Assembly: GCF_000150275.1 (NCBI RefSeq) | Contig: NW_002060943.1 | Coordinates: 207,980 to 271,979 of the forward strand | Origin: Trichoplax adhaerens | Lineage: Eukaryota > Animalia > Placozoa | DNA: 64,000 bases | Direction: 5' to 3' | Shown: piece after piece, positions 1 through 15,955 of the stretch | Position numbering within the stretch: position 1 is the stretch's first letter | Layout of the letters: every line of letters starts with the position of its first letter | Made by a program: the position numbers and the translations under genes | Notes under the pieces: model-generated | The model's input: only the letters and a program-made list of their open reading frames with translations | The model's database searches: none | Told to the model about the DNA's origin: nothing

Positions 1-40
1 ACTTGACTTCATCTCATGACAACAGCATTCATGTTACTCT

Positions 41-382
41 TCTCAATCATGTCATGCGAGTAGTAAGTAAAAGACGAGATTAAAAATCAAAAATTTAACG
101 CCTTACTAACTCATTGGGGACAATACCCTGAATATCAATTTGCAATGGAGTTGTTCAACAACGATTGAACCAGAAACTCTTTGCAATCGTTGTTGAATAC
201 TGCCTTGCTACTCTCAATCATGTCGTGCGAGTGGTAAGTAAAAGACGAGATTAAAAATCAAAAATTCAACGCCTTACTAACTCATTGGGGACAATACCCT
301 GAATATCAATTTGCAATGGAGTTGTTCAACAACGATTGAACCAGAAACTCTTTGCAATCGTTGTTGAATACTGCCTTGCTAC
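41..382. repeat. Tandem duplication, 171 bp x2, each copy with a 14-bp-stem hairpin
   Basis: Near-identical copies start at 41 and 212; TTCAACAACGATTG-16nt-CAATCGTTGTTGAA at 154-197 and 325-368. Confidence 0.92.
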
Positions 383-1929
383 ACGACACCACCTACTTCA
401 ACTGGGCTACCAACCATTCCTACAAGGATAACAAGCGATAGTGGAAAAATCATTTGCCAATACTGTAGTCAACCCAAAGTGTCTCTCCTATCTACCGGAT
501 AGAAAGGATTATGAATTCATCCAAAATAATCATAATGGACTACGGTAGCGTCACGATTGATTTCAATATTCACATGCAAGCAATTGCCACCTTTTTAATA
601 CTGCTTGTCTGTCATATCCGCTACCTTTATACAGTATTTTGTAATCGTAAATTGTCACTGATTAGACTTCCATTAAAGTCTCCTTCAAGTTGCCATTATT
701 TCCAATTTTTTTCCCATCCTCCATGAAAAAAAAGTCATCCAATCACCTTGTTGACTCTATGCAATACTCTACTACGCAAGAAACGTCCCCACCGACCACG
801 ATACTGTACGTAGTGCCAACTTGGAAAAATGACATTAGTTCTCTAATTGAAGAAGGAAAAAGTAAATTGTTGCAAAATCACTCATTTACACGATCTATCC
901 TTACTGTCTTGATGACGATGATCGAAAAGTGATTGGGCCCCCCAAAATGTCTTCTTTTTTTTTTTCCATCAAAAATGATTGTATGGCTAATACGAAGATG
1001 CTGTAGTGTGATTGCATCCTTCTCGTCATACTGACTACAGCACCCTTTTGGCTAGCTAGAAAGTTGTATCAATCTTTCCCCATTTTTGATTAATTCAATT
1101 CATTAATATTACTTTTAACAAGCCTCAATTTATTTCTTCAAACTGACTTCTATCCACTTTGACGGTGGATCACCACCAATATTCTAACTTTCTCAACATG
1201 CAAACTTGAAATGTTAAAGAAGGAGCGTCTGGATGGACGCGTTGCGAGGGGTAATTAATCCATTCCAATTCAACTCTACATTTATAATGAAGTCGATAAT
1301 TAAATCGATCATCATCTTAATCACAGTAAACTTTGGATGTTAAAAATTATGCCAGGCATCTTGTCTTTTTCCCGCTATGGTTACCAGGCTTTACCGTCCG
1401 ATTTTAATGTCAATCCTCACTGAAAACCATCGGCTTACTCATCCCTATTGCATATGCTAATATGGCGTATTCTACTTCTTGTCATATTCATTTGCTTTTC
1501 CATGATACAATTTGCCCTCGATCGATGCATTTATTTCCCCTCTATATCCAGACAGGAACCCAACTAGGATTGATACACTGCTGTTGAAAGCCTACTCATG
1601 ACATTGCCTATCAGCGATCGTTTTTCCTCCTATGCATTAGCGTAGAAGGAATAATTTGCTTCTCTCGACACTGGCTATCAATCAGCATAGCCGGCTTGGG
1701 AGATAGGAATGTATCATCACTGTCGTCGTTCTCATCTCTGCACTTACAGTAGTTCAAATCGACTTGATTCATGCATTCTCTGACCAATTCACCATAAGCA
1801 ACGTAGTATCATTCAATCAAGATGGAAAATGTATCCTCAATTCCATTTCGATAGTATTCTATCAGTGTTAAACGACACCATACGACATGATGTCGTGTTG
1901 GCCTTGATCAACCTACGATGGAGTACTAT

Positions 1930-2277
1930 TCAATTTGTTGTTGTTCAAGCAGGCGAATATTCTCAGTCCATTTCGCCGCCGTGATCAACACATGATGTAG
2001 ACCTATCCTCGTATTGAATTTAGTGGTCAAGCCGGCGACTATTCTTAGTCGAATTGGCCGCCGTGATCAACATAGGATGGAGATGTCTTGAACTTGTTAG
2101 TCAAGCAGATGAATATTCTGTGTCCTGAACTTGTTAGTCAAGCACGCGAATATTTTATGCCGGAAACTTGTTAGTTAAGCAGGCGAATATTGTATGTCCG
2201 ATTGACTGCGATCAACACCAATTTGTTAGTCAAGCAGGCGAATTGTAGATGCCTTTGAAATTGGTTTTTCAAGCAGT
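1930..2277. repeat. Degenerate minisatellite, core TTGTTAGTCAAGCAGGCGAATATT, about 7 copies
   Basis: Core variants near 1941, 2021, 2093, 2131, 2168, 2223, 2261 with spacing of about 37-80 bp. Confidence 0.8.
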
Positions 2278-4564
2278 CTACGTCTGCCTAAAATACTCCT
2301 AATTTATTTTCATGGAGAAGGAATAAACTAGTCTTCAATGTCCAACACCATGACAACGAAGTGTCCAATCGATAGGTCGAGACGGTGTCGTTTATACTTT
2401 TGAAACACTTGCCTTAATTCATGTACTCATCAGGCAAACTAGTCATGGCCGCCAGCGTTTTTCCTCCGTTTTAATGCCTATAAAAATGGCCACTACATCA
2501 TTCATTGTAATGTTCACTAGAACCATCTTATCCCTTTTTTTTCCTGACTCAACCATAGCCATAAGAGTCGTCGTTGGACATTTCGCCATGGTACGCATAT
2601 ATCAATATGAGGATTTATTCAAGAAAGATCTTTGCGGCTGTAAAAACTCCCCATACAGCTACAAATTTTCCTTTAGCAATCTCCCTATCGTCATGATAAC
2701 GGATTGACCATGATCGACTAGTGTATTCTACCTTGTTATTGGGGGGGAAATGAATTCTATACTTGAAATTCTGATACAAAATGTCGCCATAGGCTATCAA
2801 ACGGAGCGATCAATGTCGTCGCGCTCGATCGTATTGGAGAGCCATGGAGTAGTACTGTAGTAGTAGTAATTTTAGATCAAGTTTGAGAAGAAATGGAGGA
2901 TAGGAATACACTGTACTATCGTCCGTCATTTGAGAGAAATTTGTCAAGTCTGGATACCAATACGATCAGTCAATACGCCATCAGCAAGCGATATTATTTT
3001 AGGCCGGTAAATAAACAGATCCATTTCAGAATGTTTGCTACATCTTGATTTAATAAGAATCTTATCCAACTGCTAAATCTACTTGAAGAATAGCCATGCC
3101 AACAACTTGATCCATTTTATATTCCTGTACTACCTTTTGATTGCCCCCATAGAAATGATTCATTGACTAGGACGTCGTGATATTCGCTGCAAATTATCCC
3201 TCGTCTCATCATCAATCTGTTACGATTATCTTGTTGATAGACGACCTCAGTAATCTGATTGCCCTCCCATCAGTTCCATTGGAATCCATTTCTTGATGAT
3301 ATGGACACATGCTGTCAACGTTGTAACAACGGAATCGGTGACGATAGGAGAAATGGTTTGCCTGCAGTAAAGTAAAACTCCTTGATCGCCAGTTTCTTGA
3401 TACTAGATTGATTAGACTAAAAACTCTCCATCACCATCCCCCTGTTGGATCCATAGACAAATGGACATGACTTCGTTTATCCAACTGGAAGTCGTCATCA
3501 ATTCTTTTTACCCCTGAAGTTATGCTTGGATGCAGTTTCAATGAGATCCAATTCGATTATTCCCCAAGCATGATCTATAGTAGATGATTGCATTCTGCCC
3601 TACTTATCGTTCCATAAAATAGGAAAAATTGCAGCGAACGCTATCGCAAAATGATGACTTTAAAAACTTTGTTTTATGCTGTTGAAATTATGATCGTTAT
3701 TCATTCTACTCTCATCAAAGAATCAGAAAAATGGATAGGAGAAACCCTTGATCTGCACAGTATATTCCATTCGGGAAAGGACAAACTACCCGACAATTTA
3801 AAAAGCTATACAGTATTTCCTTGAATGAGCCGAGCCGGCTTCCATACTTTTAGTATTCCTGTACTATAAAAATTAGAATAGTCACCGTCAAGAACGTATT
3901 TTAGTAGGCAAGACGATATCGTGTCAAGTATTTGGCTGGCCTTCATAGGCGTTCACATAGGACTAATCATGAAAAATGAAGATAGAATAGCTGTAGTAAT
4001 GTAGTGGTGACATAATATTGTAAGCTAGAAGAAATATGGAAACATGTCTCGTCATTATCCATCAAGAAGCTAAAAATAGTGCGATCCTATACACTGCCTA
4101 CGTTCAGAATACCCCCCCCCCCCCCCATCAAAGCTGGTATACTTGTCAATGGAAAGACAGATATTGCAATCATGGACGATGATCGATACCCTGTCATCAT
4201 TTCATTGACTTTCTAGCTAATTTGAGGTCTTTCCACTGAAGTAGTGCCTAGCAATTGATCGATGTAAAACCACCAATGGAGCTACTTCAATAGAATGAGT
4301 CAACCATGGATTCTATCTTGCTTGCCAGATCATATTTCAATGATTGCAAGCTAACCAACGAATACTCGTATTGATTCCTTGGCCATTTCTACCCATTAGC
4401 AAATTGGAAATTTCGTTACCCACGTATTCACAGTATCCACCGTTGATACGTAGGTTAACAGAATACCCGTAGAAAAGTTGGGCTAGGATGAACTAGTTGC
4501 ATCGATTACTATACTTAGATTAAAAGTGAAATAATACCAATCTCCGACATCAAACCAATTTGTC

Positions 4565-4800
4565 GATGATGGACAACATCCGATGGTATAGCCTTTCAAG
4601 GTAGATGCTGCCTCGATCGACTTTGAAAAGCAATGTCAAATATCAGCCATGATCGCAAAAACTTTGATCGACCTAGACAAGATTATAGATCATGACAACA
4701 TCCAATCGTATAGCCTTTCAAGGTAGATACTATCTCAATCTACTTTGAAAAGCAATATCAAACATCAGTCATGATCATGAAAGCTTTCATCGACCCGTAC
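4565..4800. repeat. Tandem duplication, ~122 bp x2
   Basis: GACAACATCC...GTATAGCCTTTCAAGGTAGAT...CTTTGAAAAGCAAT repeated at ~4572 and ~4694. Confidence 0.85.
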
Positions 4801-7800
4801 AAGGAGAGTTCAGAAATGGACATGATGGGAATCGTGAGTGAAATAGAGTGGTGATAGAATAGGGGATAGACTTAATAATGGTAATAACTTTAGTCTTAAT
4901 GAAAATAATATACCTGTACCAACGCAATTAAATAATCACATTAGAAAACCTCGGGCTATAACGTCATGGATTATAAAGAGTCGATAGAGAAAAAGAAGAT
5001 ATTCTAACCCTAACCCCCCCCCCCCTCCATTTTTAAAAGCGGTTGTCGTTCTTATTGATATTCGTACAGTAATTTTACAGATTAGAGTAAAAATAGCGTT
5101 CAGTCAATGATAGATTGTCAATGGTCTGTACACTTTATCACCAAGACGTGAATAACATGTACTCAATATTTTGTTATGGTGAGAATTCATTTTCTAATCA
5201 AGATTGATGGATACAGTCCTTATCCTTTACCTATATCGGACTAGCCATCAAAATGGCGCCTTGAGAAAGTATCGCCAGTCAACGATAGAAATGTCTTTTC
5301 ATATTGAACTTAATTCTACTACGTCTATAGCGACTGGATTGAATATTTTTATAACTTGATTCGTCTGCTCAATCGGTCATTATTGCAGTAGGAGAGAAGT
5401 AGATACAGTATGATTGCTTGAATCGGTAGCAATAGTTCAACCATTTTATAACCCTTGCAATTGTATCAACAACTTCTACTTTATTGGCTGCAATACAACC
5501 TTTGACCGCTTGAAAATGGCCATTAAATAGATATTGCTGTACCACATGCAAACTATTGATAAATGTTTTCTAATTGACCCAAAACAATGTGACTTAATTG
5601 ATCATCATCAAATAGATTGAATTCTTGACAATCCACTATAAAAATAGACTTTACTTTTTCCTAACGCACAATACTTACCCATGCATCTAATTGGATTGTA
5701 GAAGTTGGAAAAAAAATGCAGCTTCTACACTTATTCCTTTTTCATTTCGTCTACAATAGCAGTTATGTCATTACGGTTGATTTCAATACCATCACTTAAA
5801 GAACGACAAAAGATGGCGATGATAAATGATTGCTTTATTGAACAACTCAATGTCTATTTTAATCAGTAGAGAAAAACGCCTAGAATAGGATTGTATTGAT
5901 CATCACTAGAGTATGTTAGCTAAGCATAGAATCAATCTCGAAGGGTAAAAATGAACATAGTTGACATGGCATGATCGATGAAAGCTGCAACCTATTATCT
6001 GATGGTATTCCTAATGATTTCTTGCTAGTTTCCTTGATCAACTATCCCATTCCGATAGACTATTCCATCAGCCAATTCATTAGCAATAGAAATTGAGTCA
6101 GAAATGTTGCTATAGCATTCTTTTTCGGAAGAATTATTTTATACTTTGTTCATTTTGACAAATGATTCATCATCTACCTCGCCCCAAATGAAAGTACAGC
6201 CATGATTAATAGGACACCGTAATCGTTCAACTTTTGACAAAGACTACTCCAATCTTCCTCATTGAGTAGTCCATAACCTTGACAAGGATTTCATTGACTG
6301 TATTACAATTTTGAACAATCAATATCGGAGATGACGTTAACCTTGTCAACATGGACAATCTATTCTCCATATCCAAATTTAATCATCATGATAGACTAGA
6401 GGAACGATGTAACCAAGTTGACAGCAGGAACAGGAGTATCAAGGTTATGGATACTTTTACAAATGGATAGGAATGACAATGATAATTTATTATCATAACG
6501 TTATTTTGGTTGAAGTATTTTTCCTTAATCATCTCTATCCATAATCTATCTATTATGACCTTGATAGAAAAAAAAATAGTACTATTGTACGTCCATACAA
6601 TTTCGATCATTCTCTACTTTGGTCTACAAGTGAGTAGAATAGACTAGTTCATTATGGATCCATTTTAAAAATGGATTCTTTTTCCCCCTACCATAGTTAT
6701 CCATAGAGCAAGAATCGCTAATAATATATTCTATAGCGTTGATGATCATTGTCATTGCAACAACTAAACTCGTCGTCCCCCCCCCCCCATCATATCAAAT
6801 TATTTTACTATAGCGATAGGATGATATAGAAAAATTTCATGTTAGAGTGGCGAGAACCTTGGGTATACAGTATAGTAACTTAGACTTTTAAGTGAATATT
6901 AAAATATCTGGTAATACACTTGTACCTGTTATAACTTATTCGTCTTGACCAAGCTTGCTACATGTTATTAGCAATCCGTCGTATTGATTGTCATCACTAT
7001 TGACATAGACACTAAATTAATGAAAGACGGGATGGGATGGCTTGTAGAATAGTAATTCATCAAGCTACTGTACTAGCAAAAAATCGAAAATTTTTTTTTC
7101 CATACAATCGATCAGAGCAACCACTTTTATAGTCAAATTTGAAAATTTTCCCTTCGTCATCAGTAGATGATTGTGGTCAAGCTAAGCTTTATAGGATATC
7201 TATCGACAGCATAGTACTTATTTCGATTAATGTGTCCAAGCATAAATCGGTATGCAATCGATTGATTTGTAATGGAGACCGACCCAATCTTTTCCAATCC
7301 ATTTGGTAGGGATAATATAGAAATAATATCCATTGGAAAACACCCTGCCTTCATTGCACAACCGTTGAAAACTTCTTAGGCATGTCAAATCCATTGCAAT
7401 AGAATGGCTATCAGTAATACATCATCGATATACTGTAGTAGTATTCTATTTGCATAGAATATCCACCAATAGCGTCCATGATGGACATATTAAAATATTA
7501 ATGACACTATAAGTTAGTACTGGACCGAATTCCAATGATCAATAAATAGAAAGCTTAATAACAAATAACACTTGAACAAACGTAAAATTAAGACGATTCC
7601 ATTGCGCGATGACAAGGATATCATTGACAGACAACAGCTATTGTATCCGCCATTGCTGTTATTGACTCTAGTTAAAATAGGAATCAATCAATCATTTTTT
7701 AAAGCCGATCGCTAGAGTAATTACTTTTGCAATAAATTTCAAACGTCAACATTTTGGATCTATCTTGAACTACAATCAATCCTCTGACTATAGATTATAA

Positions 7801-7956
7801 TAAATATTTTTATTCATCAAGAGAGTATCACGAATAATCGTTCTATCTTGATGCATTTAAATGCTATTTCTACTTTTACATTCAAAGAAATGAGTCCATT
7901 ATCCATCTGATTCTATTGTCTTCAAACTGACATTCATAACTATTTAAATCAATAAA

Positions 7957-9052
7957 AATGTTCAATTGACATTGACTACCTTAAAGTAGTTATAATATCT
8001 TGACTAGAATAGCAGATAGAATCGAAGCTAATTTTTTTTTTCACTTTCGATATCAAAGCTGTAACTTGTTGTATTAAACTAAATTAGTTAGGATAAGCGT
8101 GAAATAAAATAAGAAAAGCGATTTTACAAAGTAGTGGTAGTGTAATATTCTCTCCCAATATCTATACCTAGCATCGATATTGGAACATGAAGATACTTTC
8201 ATCAACTTGGGTAACAAATTCATTTTACAGTACAGCGGTATTCCAATGTACTACATCGACATGCTTACAGTCGATAGGGAGAATAAATCAACTAAATTGA
8301 ATAGAAATGAACAGTTTTGTGTAGAATGTTCAATTGGCATAGGACTACCGTAAAGTAGTCATATCTTGACTAGAATAGCAGATAGAATAGAAGCTAATTT
8401 TTTTTTCACTTACGATATCAAAGCTAGAACTTATTCTATTAAATTAAATTAGTTAGGATAAGCGTGAAATGAGATTAGAAAAGCGATTTTACAAAGTAGT
8501 GGTAGTGTAATATTCTCTCCCAATATCTATACCTAGCATCGATATTGGAACATGAAGATACTTTCATCAACTTGGGTAACAAATTCATTTTACAGTACAG
8601 CGGTATTCCAATGTACTACATCGACATGCTTACAGTCGATAGGGAGAATAAATCAACAAAATTGAATAGAAATGAACAGTTTTGTGTAGAATGTTCAATT
8701 GGCATAGGACTACCGTAAAGTAGTCATATCTTGACTAGAATAGCAGATAGAATAGAAGCTAATTTTTTTTTCACTTACGATATCAAAGCTAGAACTTATT
8801 CTATTAAATTAAATTAGTTAGGATAAGCGTGAAATGAGATTAGAAAAGCGATTTTACAAAGTAGTGGTAGTGTAATATTCTCTCCAATATCTATACCTAG
8901 CATCGATATTGGAACATGAAGATACTTTCATCAACTTGGGTAACAAATTCATTTTACAGTACAGCGGTATTCCAATGTATTACATCGACATGCTTACAGT
9001 CGATAGGGAGAATAAATCAACTAAATTGAATAGAAATGAACAGTTTTGTGTA
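7957..9052. repeat. Tandem repeat, ~365 bp x3, high identity
   Basis: Units begin AATGTTCAATTG at ~7957, ~8325, ~8690; copies 2 and 3 are almost identical. Confidence 0.95.
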
Positions 9053-9469
9053 GGTTGAGCATTTCAAAATGAAGTGATACTAGTACAACACATACATAAC
9101 TTGTTAAGCTACGTATACCGAAAGAGTAAATTTGGCCTACTGTATTTCTTAATATACCTAGAATGAATTGGCTATGAAGGTAAAAAAACGAAATCAATTT
9201 TATTTTATTTTTTTTTTTTTGCTGTCTATTCTAAACTACCAAATTTCACCTAGTTAATACAATAGACCAAAAGGTACAATTTTTTACAGATCACAAACCA
9301 TACAAAGAAAGGGGTAGCCAACGATAAATGAATTCTAGGTACCAAAAAAAATGAAATAACTCTCTAAACTAGTGCTCAATGGTAGTAGTCGGTCAAAGAA
9401 CGACAATTAATAATTGAATATCAAACTAAATATTTTGGATTTGAAGGCATCATCACTCAAATTTAAGCC

Positions 9470-9850
9470 AACCTTGACAGTTGATAACTACCATTTTTAA
9501 CCATTGACTATATATCAAAGAATGAAATAGATTAGTAACTGCGATGTATTCATTTTTAGCTTAAAACAACCCTCCTACTGTATTTAACACTTATGGACTT
9601 GACAGTGGATAACTATCATTTTATTTTTCAGCATTTATTATATTCAAGAATGAAACATTAATAGCTGTAAGCTATGCAGGCATGGATCAATTTTAACTTT
9701 AAAACAACCTCTTCTTTCTGATTTAAACACCTATTCACTGGATCATTGATAACTATTACTTCATGCTTGAGCATCCATTCTATTGAAGAATGAAACATAT
9801 TAATAACTGTAAACTAAAGAGATATGTATTCATTTTTATTTTAAAATGAC
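9470..9850. repeat. Degenerate ~130 bp repeat x3
   Basis: GATAACTA...AAGAATGAAA...TTAAAACAACC recurs three times. Confidence 0.7.
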
Positions 9851-10615
9851 TCTCGTCTTTGTAATTGAAATACAAGCGTACTTTTGATCAATTCAAAGAT
9901 ATTGTGAAGACATAGATTGAATTTAAAATAACTATCTTACTACTGCTTAATAGAAGTCATTCTCCTATGAAGTAATTGGGGTGGAACGATAATACATAAA
10001 AAAACGCTTGACTATACAAAATAACCCCGTCCTCAGAAATAGAAATGAGTAGTTGTATCAATAGAAGTATGATCATGTATTGATTGATTTAATTTTTAAG
10101 GCCTAGCTCTCATTATTCTCTGTTCCTTATTTACTTACAATATGTATGTATCATCAAATATAGATAAAGCGATAAACGGTAGATATTGTATGTGATAAGG
10201 TCATAAATAGAACTAGCAGAAGATTAGGGTGCGATTAATTTGCACTTAAAAATTCATCAATTGCATACACTATACATCTACCCTTAATACCTTTTGAGGA
10301 CTATCAATCACCGTAGATAAGAACAAATTGAGATTATTATCGATGGAAAATATAAACTAGTAATGGACTTGATAAATTTTTTAATAAAGATGTACAGTAC
10401 AGTATATTCTCCTCTAGCATAATAATTTTATAGTTTATATTATTGTAAACGGAAAATATAAAACTAGTGATTCACTTGACAAATTTCCTCTAACGATACA
10501 TCTTAGACGTTAATACATTGATTTTATATCGTTATGTTATACTTGAAAATAACCAATTTTTTAATCATTTTGCACTACACTGTTAAGCTAATATTGTTTC
10601 TATAATTAATATTAG

Positions 10616-13600
10616 ACGAAATGGTACCCGAAGACCTACGATAATTCCATTCGAGCCTCCAGAACTATCGATACAAAATAGTGAAAAGCAGCTAAAACCA
10701 TGCAATCCAGGAGTATTTATACTACATATGGTCAACCGACAGATATATCTTAGCTACAAGTATGTAAAAAGTGAATTATATAGTTATACAATTCTATTTC
10801 ATCAGCTATAATGTTAAATTGACGTTATTAGCTATACTTTAACTCAATTAATAATTCAACCAGTATGATGTAACAATGTTGCTTATAATGTCAATATAGA
10901 TCAGCTGAAAGGGAAATTAGCCATGCGCCAATATCGGTCACCGCAGAAGGTTATAACCTGAACAAGAAAAATTATACCGATATTAAAATGCTAATAGAAT
11001 TTCATAGCAAACACCCTATCAATGGCACCTTACTATCGATACAGGTAAATTGAAATAACTTGAAAAGTTAACATATAAACTGTATATTTAGCCATAGCTG
11101 TTACCTCATAATTTCGTTTTTATAATGTACGATATATATGTATACTTAATTGATACGAAATATAGCAACAACCTGAATGCAACATTCCTGTTTGGAACGC
11201 TCCTGACATCAACCCTCAAGCAAAGAGTAAGCATCATCATCAATTAATGATTGGTAACGCGTTTGATGATATTCGCAAGAATGGACGCATCATTAAAATT
11301 TTAGTCAGTGCATCTCACACTGGTTAGTAATATGAATAAATCATTTTTAGTACAATTGTAGTTTTTATCGATCATCGGTAGATGCATTTATTTCGTTATT
11401 TTAATACTTGTTCAATCAATCATACATACGTATATTCATTGTAGACTTCAATCAAGAGAGACAGATGTTATTAGAACGAGTCTTTCCGAAAATACGACTA
11501 CATTGTTTTGAGCATGGATATGATTTTCAAGCTATTGATGTAACCTGGGGTATTAAAAGCCTTATATTAGATGAGCACAATATTACTCGATTGACGTTAG
11601 ATTTGCTACGTTACTGCCAAGAGCAATCCGTTGGGCCTAACTTTATCGTAAGTCATACAATTATGTTATAAAAGATTATTAAAAAAAATTACTGCTGTGT
11701 AAAACGTTTTGACATTTTAAAATCATAAATATGAAACGTATTCGATATTTTTAGACCTTAGTGGGTGACAGATATGGTTATCGTCCACTGCCAACTAAAA
11801 TTTTCGATAAAGAATTTAAGCAGATGTTAGCAGCTATTGAAAATCAGGAGCATAGGAAATTTTTTACCGAGTGGTTTGTGTTAGATGAAAATTCTGTTCC
11901 TGCGACGCATGTATTACAGCCAATTAGTTCAGTATACCGTGATTTTAACTCAACAAGTAGCAATGCACGCAAGGCTGCCGAGGGAAATTGGCAGAAAGCA
12001 TTCAATAGATTGCAAGATATTTTATATTCAAGTCTGAAAGGAATATCTGACGAAAAAGCAAGACCGAAATATTTGCTATCTGGTCAGTATTTCAATATAT
12101 ATAGAGAGAGAGATAATGACGTACGTCTTGCTCTCCTTTTACAATTATAGACTTACATAATTGGTATTATCTTACATAAATGACCATCCGTTAGGTCCAT
12201 TAACAAATAATCTTTTTCTCATTTCCACAGAAACCCATATGATCGCTCAGGAAGCCATATTGCGATCAGATAATCCTAACTTTAATTGTATCTTAATGCG
12301 TAGAAATATTACAGATATTAAAAAATTCGTTGGCAATGATTCTAAAATAAGTGATTACTTAGATGTTAACCCTGAATCTGGCGTTATCGATAGCCACGCT
12401 CAAGATTTGTTGTCAACACTTATTGATAACTACATTCCTTCTAGACTACACCATACCAATATATTGAGTTATGATGTAAAGTGGAAAGCTAATGTTGGAA
12501 TCGACAAGAACAAATCAACAGATCATTCCAAGTATATGAATGGACTATGTACTGACGTTACGGAAAAGTTAACATCCTTAGTTGATCAAGCGATCCAAAC
12601 GCATTCTTCGCTAAACTTTAATGATGATGATCTCTATGAAGAAGTTAATCACCATACTGCGCTGTGTTTAACAAAATTTAATGAATTTCATGGATGCGAA
12701 GATCTCTTACAAGCTATCGAACGTTATGTACGAAGTAATAGCAAGCAACCTCTTGTATTATTAGGTCCCTCAGGATGTGGCAAAACATCATTAATATCTG
12801 CAGCTACTAGAGAATGCAAAAAATGGCTAGGATCATCTGGCTGTGTTGTTGTACGCTATTGCGGTACATCACCTGAATCTGGTAATATAAGATTACTGCT
12901 AAGAAGCGTATGTCAACAATTTCGAAAAATTTATAACGGTGACCCAGCTACTACACCAGAGGTAAACCTATCAACATAACTCTTTTATTCTATCATAATT
13001 TACAACGTATCACTTGAGTAGTCCGTAATTATAACTTCCTTAACTATGCAGACTTATAAAGAACTAAGGGACGACCTAATGAAACGGTTAAAAATGGCTA
13101 CCACCTTTTTTCCGCAAGTTCTTATAATTGATGGTTTAGATCAATTATCAGATGATGATAATGCACACGAAATACAATGGTTACCGAAGACATTACCGGA
13201 GTACGTTAAAGTTATCCTATCAGTGAGATCAGACTCATCTAGTCCTGCTTTACGAAGTTTAAGGGTAAATTTCATTCACTGTGATTTATGTAATTATTCT
13301 TGCTCAAAATTTTTCTATTCAAAAAATTTTCCACAATCTTGATGTTTTAATAAATATACTCTTGATGTTGACCGTTTACACAGACAATATACGCAAGTGA
13401 ATCAAACTTTCTAGAAGTACCCCCTATGTCAGAATCTGAAGCCAGCATCGTTTTTGATATATGGATGAATACCAAAGCACGACGCCAAGTTGGTAGTGAT
13501 CAAATAAATGCGATTATGCGTACTTTCTCCAAATGTCCTAAACCACTTTTTCTCAAGTTAATTTACGAAAGATCATGTAAATGGCATTCATATTCTAAAG

Positions 13601-15955
13601 GTGACGTAACATTTTTAGCCTCAACCTTAGAAGAAATTGTTGAACAACATTTCGAAACTTTAGAACAAAAACATGGAAAAGTTTTAGTTAGCTCTGCTTA
13701 CGGATATATTACAGCCTCACGCTATGGTTTAACAGAGTCTGAAATAGAAGATCTCTTATCATCAGATAACGACGTTATTACCGCTATCTATGATAAAAAT
13801 GTCCCGACAGTTGCACGTATTCCACCGATCACATGGATCCGATTACGAGCTGATGCTGGTAGCTACTTAAGCTTGTATACCGCCAATCGATGTCGTGTAC
13901 TCAAATGGTTTCATCGATTTATTGATGAATGCGCCGCAAGGCGATATCTATCTTCAGAACAACAACGTAAAAATAATTACACTGCCCTAAGTGACTATTT
14001 TCGCGGTACTTGGAGTAATAATCGGAAAAAGCCTTGTAAGAATACAAGTGTGGACAGGTTATTACCTCCTCAACCACTAATATATAGCACCAAGGAAGGA
14101 AATAGGCCAATATACAATTTCCGTAAATTGGCTGAACTACCTTATCACTTACTTCGTGCAGGTAACAACTATCGTAAAAATGTACCATAATATAGTGTAT
14201 GAAACGTTTAACAAAGAATTTTTGTTCTCTTTTTAAAAATACTACTAAAATAATATTGTTAGCATACCACTCACATGCACTACCGATTAATTATGGTATA
14301 TCCCAAAAAGTAAATCATTCATTTTATCAACTTATACTTTCCACATAGGTGAAATTGACAAAATGAAGGAAGAAACACTTTGTAATTATGAATTTATTTT
14401 GACCAAAGCTTGTGCAATGTCAGTGGCACAAGTTTTAGACGACATCAATCTTGCCCTTCAAAGTCCAGGAAGTGTCGGCGACAAAGAATTACAACTTCTA
14501 CATGATGCTCTAGTAATATCTATGAATGCCCTCAAAATGGACCCTACTCAGCTTGCATCTCAATTAATTGGTCGAATTGGTCGAAGTGTTGATAAAAAAT
14601 TAACACATTTAAATGCTCTCTTACAACAGGCAATGAAGCCATCAATCCCTAATTTAATTCCACGTCGAGAATGCTTAACTAGGCCTGGTAGTGAAAAACC
14701 AAACCTAGCTAGCATCGATATGGCAAGTCTTAATATGGAAAAATTATATATGAATAATTCAAACGTCAATGTTACAACTACTTCAAAGAAACGTAAAACT
14801 TTTACAGTATGGAATGTTAACAGTTGCCTTCCAGTCCGCTCATTTCGAAATATTACCGTTGATCAAATTGTTATCATGAAAAGCAACAAAATAGCTGTTT
14901 ACTTCGATCGTCGAATTGTTATCATTGATTTAGATTCCGGTGAAGTATTAAACAAGATCAAGGGATTTCACTATCAGCCCAAATTTCTTGATAATGAACA
15001 CCTAGTAACTCTTTCTCGTGGTAGAAAATTTGTCAAGATCGTTAATGCTATATCGGGTGACTCTATTGCATCTTTAAAGGCAGATCAGAAAAATTGTATC
15101 GATCGTTTAATGGTTAGTAGTGCAGGTAGTTTAGCTTTATGTATTTACAAGACCGAGGAAAATATCATCGGATTTATTTCTTGGGACCTTAAAACAAAGC
15201 AACAATTACCTAAATTTGATATCAAAGATTATATCTTTAAAGAGCATATTATAAGATATTCGTCTCTAAGTGATGATGGCGAAATATTTGTTGCCGCTTC
15301 TGATGGAACACGTAAATCAGCAGAAAAGCAAGCTGCCGTAGTATTTGACGTAAAAAGCGGCAAAGTTAACTTTGGCCTATTGTATGAATCATCTCAAGCC
15401 AGAGGATTGCCAATTGGTTTTACATGTTTTACCATCTCGAAAGATATTATATTATCTGGTTGCAAAGATAGTAGCCTTCGTTGCTGGAATAGAATTAACG
15501 GTAAAGTAATTCACTCATTAAAGGGCCATAGTAGGCCAGTTCAACAGATTCGAGTAGATGAAGATAGCTACCGTGCTATCACGGTTGCAAACCATCGTGA
15601 AGATAACAGTATCAGACTTTGGGATGTCAGACAAGGTTTACCTCTAAGTTGTTTTATACCAGATGAAATTCCTAAATGTGTTGGTATCACAAACTGTGGT
15701 TCATGGATTGTATTCTCCGTTGAAAAAGCCGAGAATTTAGGAGTACTTGGCCTCTTTTCGAATAAATCCGAGCCTGGTACTGTTAATGAAGAACGTGCTA
15801 TCGATGATGCCTTCACTGAAATCGATCTTGAACCTTGTTGTACAGCGCCGCATGATCCATTTGATGGCGATGACGATGTTGATGAATATGAATTTGATGC
15901 AGTCACAATCGAAACCGACACCTCAACAGACCCTATGACCAGTGATGACTTATAA
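10616..15955 (+). CDS. NWD1/NWD2-like STAND NTPase: SH2-like - DUF4062 (TIR-like) - NACHT - WD40 - acidic tail; 5' end incomplete, >=1434 aa
   Basis: Phase-consistent GT-AG exons: 10616-10759, 10900-11044, 11166-11322, 11445-11647, 11755-12082, 12231-12961, 13052-13264, 13384-14161, 14349-15955 (TAA). DUF4062-type motifs KILVSASHTDFNQER...DFQAIDVTWGI...GPNFITLVGDRYGYRPLP; Walker A GPSGCGKT; Walker B VLIIDGLDQL; NWD-type segments SRYGLTESEIEDLLS, RIPPITW, NFRKLAELPYHL; WD repeats ILSGCKDSSLRCWN, LKGHSRPV, DNSIRLWD. Start codon not found: in-frame stop at 10584 and an AG acceptor at 10614-10615 imply an upstream exon. Confidence 0.92.
10640..11044 (+). other. SH2-like domain (degenerate) encoded by the first two identified exons of the NACHT gene
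   Basis: Spliced translation PFEPPELSIQNSEKQLKPCNPGVFILHMVNRQIYLSYK/SAEREISHAPISVTAEGYNLNKKNYTDIKMLIEFHSKHPINGTLL follows SH2 order: alphaA (LSxxxSExxL), GxFILH (=GxFLVR), betaC (IYLSY), betaD (ISHAPI), GYxL, and YxDIxxLIEFHSKHP (=FxSLxELVEHY..P). Visual alignment only. Confidence 0.7.

Follow-up and report, generated by a model that had tools for sequence, protein, structure and literature searches.

STAND/NLR-type proteins are switches defined by the heads that they display on oligomerisation: death-fold, TIR or enzymatic domains. For two proteins of this kind, NWD1 and NWD2, we know of no accepted mechanism. Here we analysed a gene of the NWD1/NWD2-like family of the placozoan Trichoplax adhaerens, found at positions 10616-15955 of a 64,000-nt stretch of DNA (contig NW_002060943.1, positions 207,980 to 271,979 of the forward strand; hereafter the window). 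In its predicted product an extra domain, most probably a divergent SH2 fold, precedes the DUF4062, NACHT and WD40 domains. The genome was available as a 105.6-Mb assembly of 1,414 contigs with 32.6% G+C.

DUF4062 has been described as a TIR-like NAD+ hydrolase (NADase) domain: TEP1 is active through E1008, human NWD1, NWD2 and NPHP3 showed no NADase activity in vitro, and oligomerisation-driven activation was proposed for TEP1 and for the bacterial DUF4062 NADases Swarozyc and Evangelion (bioRxiv 10.64898/2026.05.01.722283). Bacterial Eva01 requires the aromatic residue F11 and the glutamate E87, located in an acidic S-Y-T...E-Y region (bioRxiv 10.64898/2026.06.25.731849). The DUF4062/TIR-like domain of TEP1 adjoins a NACHT-type ATPase, as it does in the Trichoplax protein.

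Apaf-1 and the placozoan Apaf-1-like NB-ARC-WD40 proteins share the STAND logic with the Trichoplax protein: WD40 repeats act as the sensor, nucleotide binding provides the switch, and oligomerisation puts the N-terminal module on display (PMC6321704). They carry an NB-ARC ATPase, whereas the Trichoplax protein belongs to the NACHT clade and its predicted N-terminal module is not death-fold. In Trichoplax sp. H2 one gene was reported to encode NACHT, WD40 and IPR025139, without an effector domain or SH2 (Kamm et al., PMC6321704).

Human SH2 domains lacking the FLVR arginine are only those of RIN2 and TYK2, which have His in its place, and of SH2D5, which has Trp. The domains with His do not bind phosphotyrosine through it, the SH2 domain of TYK2 binds a receptor peptide without phosphotyrosine, and SH2 domains without the arginine bind peptides that contain Glu or phosphothreonine (PMC7530234).

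Three small exons are spliced onto the NWD-like gene

An initial annotation of the window had proposed that three small exons (10616-10759, 10900-11044 and 11166-11322) are spliced in phase onto an NWD-like gene. All three have AG acceptors and GT donors, and one open frame runs from 10617 through them into the gene at 11445. Contigs assembled from four public runs (X1, X4, X5 and X11) were aligned on window 5800-11750. X4, X5 and X11 belong to three different studies, X11 being on record as RNA; X1 covers introns and intergenic DNA and served in effect as a DNA control. Each of X4, X5 and X11 yielded a contig from which exactly 10760-10899, 11045-11165 and 11323-11444 were removed, all of them GT..AG. 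The three predicted joints, 10759/10900, 11044/11166 and 11322/11445, were thus present in spliced contigs of three studies, and the proposal was confirmed. The same contigs continue past 11647 into sequence starting at 11755; they place the end of the fourth exon, annotated at 11649, at 11647, where it is followed by the donor gtaagt.

For exons 5-9, placement relied on GT-AG sites and on the requirement that exon-wise alignments to relatives abut. The joints are supported by RNA up to exon 5; the exon 5/6 joint and the end of exon 6 are confirmed by an orthologue (see below), and the last three joints are predictions. The end of exon 5 at 12082 agrees with an orthologue exon of equal length, also followed by GT. 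The predicted coding sequence has 4,398 nt, or 1,465 codons. The features of the locus, with the evidence for each, are as follows.

Window -1371..-1271, outside the window (G000:C1414:206608-206708, L003:1431-1531), + strand: first coding exon; RNA contig overhang, ATG and donor GT
1..10615, + strand: part of an intron (the 3' 10.6 kb of the 11,886-nt first coding intron); 5' ends of RNA contigs and phase
10616..10759, + strand: exon 1, short linker and N-terminal half of the SH2-like domain (alphaA, betaB, betaC ...IYLSY); RNA joint and N-half model
10900..11044, + strand: exon 2, C-terminal half of the SH2-like domain, spanning betaD (which carries the conserved His), betaE, alphaB and betaG; RNA joints, Pfam SH2_2 and ESM Atlas
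11166..11322, + strand: exon 3, linker of about 38 amino acids (aa) and first DUF4062/TIR-like strand (IKILVSASHT, family consensus IFTSSTFT); RNA joints and family alignment
11445..11647, + strand: exon 4, DUF4062 core; phmmer match to DUF4062 of relatives and RNA
11755..12082, + strand: exon 5, remainder of DUF4062 and the long insert of the family (YGYRPLP ... VLQPISS); tblastn to P0004/P0005/P0009, start by RNA, end by orthologue
12231..12961, + strand: exon 6, beginning of NACHT, including Walker A GPSGCGKT, preceded by a degraded S-x-T-E-x-E motif (here S-E-T-H-M-I) and a helical spacer; abutting alignments and L047
13052..13289, + strand: exon 7, NACHT Walker B VLIIDGLDQ; Pfam NACHT at 22.9 bits on the open reading frame piece, boundaries predicted from GT-AG sites and abutting alignment
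13418..14161, + strand: exon 8, HTH_NWD1 winged helix and helical domain; PF25469, boundaries predicted
14349..15955, + strand: exon 9, helical domain followed by a single WD40 propeller, the conserved acidic tail and the stop codon (15953-15955); PF00400 and orthologue P0258/L046

The protein would thus consist, in order, of a lipid-anchor-type start, a short basic, Ser-rich leader, the SH2-like domain, a 38-aa linker, DUF4062, NACHT, winged helix, WD40 and an acidic tail. We read the locus as a single expressed gene of approximately 1,465 codons, a placozoan member of the N-myristoylated branch of the NWD1/NWD2-like STAND NTPases; this reading and the full mechanism set out below, taken jointly, have a probability slightly above even.

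The runs differ at some positions. The variant 10659 C>G (X1 and X5) changes Pro to Ala just before the SH2-like alphaA, and two synonymous variants, 11216 T>A and 11545 C>T, occur in other runs under the same organism label.

Exons 1 and 2 resemble the two halves of an SH2 domain

Every SH2 search, comparison and fold took a single exon as input, and the attainable score was halved because the SH2-like domain is split over two exons. The SH2-like reading of these exons, made in the initial annotation, was upheld by several tests that are each modest, below the curated family threshold.

The Pfam family SH2_2 (PF14633) matched exon 2 with an E-value of 1.4e-3 (18.5 bits) and was the sole family match at E<=10. 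In ESM Atlas, a protein language model resource, 27 of the 30 neighbours of exon 2 were SH2 clusters (best 0.92, 188/256 shared features, recognition 2992); exon 1 gave no usable match there.

Hidden Markov models (HMMs) for the N-terminal and the C-terminal half of the domain were built from the canonical SH2 exons of this same genome. Exon 1 matched the N-half model at 7.8 bits, a score reached by none of 2000 shuffles (p<5e-4), with ELSIQNSEKQLKPC-NPGVFI aligned to alphaA-betaB. Exon 2 matched the C-half model at 4.7 bits (6 of 2000 shuffles, p=0.003). No match was obtained in the cross-controls, which compared exon 1 with the C-half, exon 2 with the N-half and exon 3 with both models, and the N-half model found nothing at E<=1 in 257 NWD1/2-like relatives. 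When aligned by hhalign to ten full SH2 domains, exon 1 (aa 15-28) fell on alphaA (P 0.024) and exon 2 on alphaB (P 0.076), in collinear order. The HMM, hhalign and ESM Atlas matches together trace the collinear SH2 core pattern alphaA - betaB (FLxR) - betaC (Y-x-L-S-h) - betaD (h-x-H-h-x-h) - alphaB (F-x-s-h-x-x-L-h-x-x-Y/H).

The position of the intron agrees with this pattern. Exon 1 ends in ...CTT AGC TAC AA, followed by gtatgt; the intron interrupts, in phase 2, the codon next to L-S-h, where betaC ends. Of the 17 N-half exons from split canonical SH2 domains in this genome, 13 have the same place and phase (A[AG] or CG before the donor GT, after LS-x). The shared intron place was used as a supporting, not a defining, criterion for SH2 membership. 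Among the canonical SH2 exons of the genome (L012-L033), ten encode an SH2 domain that no intron interrupts; a stretch of about 80 kb on contig C1408 contains five of these.

Several results weigh against SH2 homology. The SH2_2 score remained below the family cut-off (18.5 against 27 bits), PF00017 matched neither exon 1 nor exon 2, and the NWD locus was not among the 48 exon matches of a PF00017 scan of the genome. PDB sequence searches with exon 1, with exon 2 and with two-species profiles of each were blank or returned noise. AlphaFold2 placed a helix in the exon 1 fragment where betaB-betaC would be expected, an out-of-context fragment being a weak test. For the exon 2 fragment it gave a hairpin and then a helix, in SH2 order, at low confidence (predicted local distance difference test, 63), a result in favour of SH2; Foldseek with this model returned noise only. 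When the halves encoded by the two exons were co-folded, the score was 0.19 (mark 0.34), which counts neither for nor against the homology.

These results could also come from a small domain that is genuine and conserved yet not homologous to SH2, with a likeness that is convergent or a matter of chance: no curated SH2 threshold was reached, PF00017 was silent, the PDB sequence searches and the helix of exon 1 gave no support, and the positive tests are individually modest. Against this explanation, five kinds of test agree both on the SH2 family and on the correct half, with clean controls that include the silence of the N-half model over 257 large proteins of unrelated regions, and convergence would hardly produce an identical intron place and phase. 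We consider it rather unlikely. The likeness is more than chance, as judged by several independent tests of modest strength, SH2 homology of exons 1-2 has a high probability, and the extra conserved domain is most probably a divergent SH2 fold without the phosphotyrosine-binding arginine.

The SH2-like domain lacks the phosphotyrosine-binding arginines

The FLVR arginine (betaB5), invariant in 10 canonical SH2 domains of this genome, is replaced by His (GVFILH) in Trichoplax and in a second placozoan (see below), and the alphaA arginine is replaced by Ile in both. The betaB-betaC loop, which binds phosphate, is about 2 residues shorter than in canonical domains. The betaD His, which in many SH2 domains touches phosphotyrosine, and the core hydrophobic residues are retained. 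With His in place of the FLVR Arg, the domain is unlikely to read phosphotyrosine in the ordinary way.

His at the FLVR place is shared with TYK2 and RIN2, and the sole Pfam match of exon 2, SH2_2, is the family of the Spt6 tandem SH2 domains; no specific kinship of the Trichoplax domain to the SH2 domains of TYK2/JAK, RIN2, SH2D5 or Spt6 was detectable. The JAK domain is part of a FERM-SH2 receptor-binding unit, whereas the Trichoplax domain would lie between a lipid anchor and a TIR-like domain. Src-family kinases have the order SH4 lipid anchor - unique region - SH3 - SH2 - kinase - tail. Like these kinases, the Trichoplax protein has a Gly2 myristoylation-type start with a nearby Cys, a disordered leader and an SH2-type domain; unlike them, it has no SH3, no kinase, no conserved tail tyrosine and no SH2 phosphotyrosine arginines, and the likeness is an analogy only.

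The SH2-like exons are conserved in a second placozoan

A search with the exon 6 open reading frame retrieved the Logan protein P0259, 91% identical, and contigs L047 and L048. L047 aligns to window 10618-14153 with 74.6% nucleotide identity. Exons 1-6 have identical lengths in L047, with AG and GT at the same places; the introns are 57-65% identical and synonymous sites are near saturation. Exon 1 shows 89% aa identity to L047:674-817, with 5 non-synonymous (of 110 sites) against 24 synonymous changes. The ratio of non-synonymous to synonymous rates (dN/dS) was 0.06 for exon 2 (L047:932-1076), 0.02 for exon 3 and 0.02-0.03 for exons 3-6. The segment GVFILHMVNRQIYLSY is identical in both placozoans. 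The exon lengths, the splice sites and the low non-synonymous change indicate that selection acts on the SH2-like domain as part of the protein in two placozoan lineages or more.

A third source, the European Nucleotide Archive (ENA) metagenome contig L046 (ERZ27263980, k141_517463; protein P0258), covers the last exons with 87% identity. The presence of this 3.2-kb contig means that the sample, environmental or from an aquarium, contained placozoan DNA. No orthologues were found in the JGI metagenomes scanned.

The C-terminal 40 residues (window 15830-15952) are almost invariant between two placozoans, whereas the rest of exon 9 is 87% identical. This tail, a conserved short linear motif, is acidic and Ser/Thr-rich, with many CK2-type sites. 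Its sole tyrosine is Phe in the orthologue, which rules out a Src-like latch formed by a phosphotyrosine tail.

An upstream exon encodes a lipid-anchor-type start

Exon 10616-10759 had been annotated as the first exon and the SH2-like domain as the N-terminus of the protein; neither was found to be so. No in-frame ATG precedes the domain in this exon, the open frame beginning at 10587 without Met. The X4, X5 and X11 contigs share the same 30 letters 5' of 10616, which are absent from the window and match the genome at one place only, C1414:206678-206707, which precedes the window by 1.27 kb. The first coding exon so located ends 1,271 nt before window base 1. Its ATG at L003:1431 lies in good context, with an in-frame TAG 2 codons upstream and a 101-nt coding stretch down to the donor GT at 1532. 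It encodes MGSSCAKGNRNN...RAPA plus 2 bases, and its phase 2 together with the A at 10616 gives Gly and restores the frame of 10617. The first coding intron measures 11,886 nt and window 1-10615 is therefore intronic.

This long intron contains tandem repeats: a 365-nt unit present three times at 7957-9053 (96% identity), over which the depth of the RNA runs shifts sharply, and a 140-nt unit present 1.9 times at 9550-9816 (77%).

The start peptide, MGSSCAKG, fits the N-myristoylation pattern G-{EDRKHPFYW}-x-x-[STAGCN]-{P} and has Cys at position 5. Starts of this consensus, often with Cys3 (MGC...), occur in 48 of the 257 NWD1/2-like relatives, mostly together with acidic C-terminal tails; a CaaX-type box is found at the C-terminus of 72. 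At a glance, the CaaX-type tail and the N-myristoylation start seem mutually exclusive among these relatives. The Trichoplax protein has the pattern of myristoylation start and acidic tail, by which the upstream exon is independently supported as the true start.

NWD proteins had been assumed in the annotation to begin at DUF4062. In the myristoylation-type subgroup, a low-complexity leader of 50-275 aa, with a hydrophobic fraction of 0.11-0.30, lies between Gly2 and DUF4062; at the place of this leader the Trichoplax protein has a compact segment of 95 residues with a hydrophobic fraction of 0.34 (exons 1-2).

An exact match to the RFX X-box, GTAGCCTAGGTAAC (pattern GTNRCCNNRGYAAC, near-palindromic), is present at L003:782-795 (G000:C1414:205959-205972). 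It is a single site that precedes the start codon by approximately 650 nt and is not part of the window. The pattern had zero exact matches across the 64-kb window, where 0.03 were expected.

The remaining domains are those of an NWD1-like protein

HTH_NWD1 (PF25469) matched exon 8 with 67.7 bits (E 1.2e-18, cut-off 27), and WD40 (PF00400) matched exon 9 with 36.2 bits, together with many beta-propeller families. NACHT and NPHP3_N gave weak Pfam matches on the pieces, and the NACHT Walker A (GPSGCGKT) and Walker B (VLIIDGLDQ) motifs are both intact. Pfam DUF4062 did not match the Trichoplax exon pieces directly; exon 4 matched by phmmer (E 2e-18) the region of relatives that is positive for PF13271 (DUF4062), and a family alignment of 200 columns is collinear.

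The winged-helix piece matched 3,557 library proteins, the best with 45% identity. Named matches were NWD1-like and NWD2-like proteins of hemichordates, amphioxus, molluscs, corals and others; neither this search nor profiles of P0009 and of the window pieces returned a full-length Trichoplax protein. Invertebrate NWD1-like proteins of the N-myristoylation type, from a hemichordate, a mollusc and a coral among others (P0005, P0009, P0035 and P0077), have the same order DUF4062 - NACHT - HTH_NWD1 - helical - WD40. These relatives share 38-45% winged-helix identity, the MG... start and the acidic tail with the Trichoplax protein. They differ in length, with approximately 1,700 aa against 1,465 aa and a single propeller in Trichoplax; their leader is of low complexity and without SH2, and their SSTF aromatic residue and S-x-T-E-x-E glutamates are lost in the Trichoplax protein.

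No SH2 was found in the 257 NWD1/2-like relatives or in the Pfam pre-computation of 120 listed family members, and a literature search found no paper with SH2 on a NACHT or STAND protein. A divergent SH2 hidden in the leaders of relatives was considered and rejected: the leaders have no similarity to exons 1-2, no SH2 HMM match and low hydrophobicity. The Trichoplax genome has at least five further HTH_NWD1-positive loci and, in addition, a cluster of weak matches (C1414:6353113-6387788, C1384:76302, C1410:5246217, C1410:7555460-7639388), and sequence similar to exons 1-2 is absent from all of them. The known part of the protein is an NWD1-like STAND protein and the new part an inserted atypical SH2. 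In agreement with the initial annotation, which considered the architecture undescribed, the predicted combination SH2 - DUF4062 - NACHT - WD40 was found in no other relative and in no paper.

The TIR-like module appears to have lost its catalytic residues

DUF4062 residues were read from an alignment of 153 relatives. The Trichoplax domain keeps most conserved columns (ER, GPNF, YGYRP and VLQPISS) and departs from the family at three places: SASH for SSTF, TWG for RWG and S-E-T-H-M-I for S-V-T-E-x-E, of which the second Glu is conserved in at least 90% of relatives. The orthologue shows the same changes. By motif alignment, both the essential aromatic F and the catalytic Glu of the TEP1 and bacterial DUF4062 NADases are replaced, and the TIR-like module would be catalytically dead.

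Weighing against this interpretation, the equation of S-x-T-E-x-E with the catalytic Glu draws on the motif descriptions of two preprints and on general TIR knowledge rather than on an alignment to the TEP1 structure. A PDB sequence search with exon 4 reached the TEP1 TIR entry 11gz only at E 0.58, the start of exon 6 gave no usable PDB match, and a search with P0009 was swamped by WD40. The catalytic motif was not located in the retrieved stretches of four Trichoplax paralogues.

Proposed mechanism and alternative explanations

The Trichoplax protein would be held at the membrane through its lipidated N-terminus. Binding of a ligand to the WD40 end would permit nucleotide-driven oligomerisation of NACHT in the manner of Apaf-1, the oligomerisation steps being drawn from STAND proteins such as Apaf-1, and oligomerisation would cluster the N-terminal modules beneath the membrane. 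The clustered SH2-like domains may then bind a partner peptide without phosphotyrosine, or one with an acidic or phosphorylated Ser/Thr group, as in TYK2/JAK and Spt6. Since the TIR-like module looks catalytically dead and the SH2-like domain lacks the phosphotyrosine arginines, the output is, judging from these residues, most likely scaffolding rather than NAD+ hydrolysis or phosphotyrosine reading. It counts against the mechanism that we infer lipidation, membrane location, oligomerisation and any ligand alike. A membrane-anchored NWD switch with a scaffolding SH2-like head is nevertheless the best explanation of the whole, and we give it a little more credence than its contrary.

The SH2-like domain could instead work in cis, clamping the acidic tail of its own protein (…DGDDDVDE-Y/F-EFDAVTIETDTSTDPMTSDDL, possibly Ser/Thr-phosphorylated) as an autoinhibitory latch until ligand arrives. 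The near-invariance of the last 40 residues, set against 87% for the rest of the exon, would fit such a role, and so would the Spt6-type SH2_2 as best Pfam match of exon 2 and the binding of Glu-containing or phosphothreonine peptides by SH2 domains without the arginine (PMC7530234). Acidic tails accompany the N-myristoylated family members in general. Those relatives have the tails without any SH2, so the tail has another, older partner, and a cis latch is unlikely.

Alternatively, the domain could be a working phosphotyrosine reader, by which the oligomer docks on tyrosine-phosphorylated proteins or recruits components of a tyrosine-kinase pathway. The domain is SH2-like and keeps the betaD His, the 48 SH2 exon matches in the genome suggest that phosphotyrosine signalling is presumably available, and the combination of lipid anchor and SH2 recalls Src-family kinases. 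Against it stand the substitution of His for the FLVR Arg and of Ile for the alphaA Arg, and the shortened loop, all three shared by the second placozoan; where human SH2 domains have His at that place, they bind no phosphotyrosine through it (PMC7530234), and the sole Tyr of the conserved tail is Phe in the orthologue. We regard this alternative as quite improbable. The initial annotation had offered two outputs, kinase-type signalling or an adaptor surface: the kinase link is weakened by these same replacements, and an atypical adaptor surface is the better reading.

That the small exons belong to a different transcript, or that their joints are assembly chimeras, would be conceivable in so far as the splice evidence consists of assembled contigs rather than raw reads, but it is very improbable given identical joints in contigs from three independent studies that link the upstream exon to exons 1-4 and these to exon 5, canonical GT..AG sites, a frame preserved across the small-exon joints and an exon structure kept in a second species.

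Implications for the NWD family

The analysis gives a corrected, RNA-supported gene model with its first exon 11.9 kb upstream. As a tentative and rather uncertain extension, this may be the first natural case of an SH2-type adaptor fused to an oligomerising switch of the STAND/NLR-like kind: a placozoan membrane-anchored NWD receptor, possibly RFX-regulated (ciliary), whose TIR-like head has abandoned NADase chemistry and which signals by clustering phosphotyrosine-independent SH2 domains. If the fusion reading is true, the protein would be nature's equivalent of the SH2-death-domain adaptors that have been engineered to rewire signalling.

An SH2-type head would, if confirmed, be a new class of STAND output, and it would place SH2 in a new context beyond tyrosine-kinase signalling, chromatin (Spt6) and cytokine-receptor binding (JAK). 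Lipid anchors, which may sit at either terminus, and the upstream X-box are features that bear on where the family acts. With its switch kept and its head visibly exchanged, this NWD paralogue would offer a handle both on the role of the head and on the site of action of the family.

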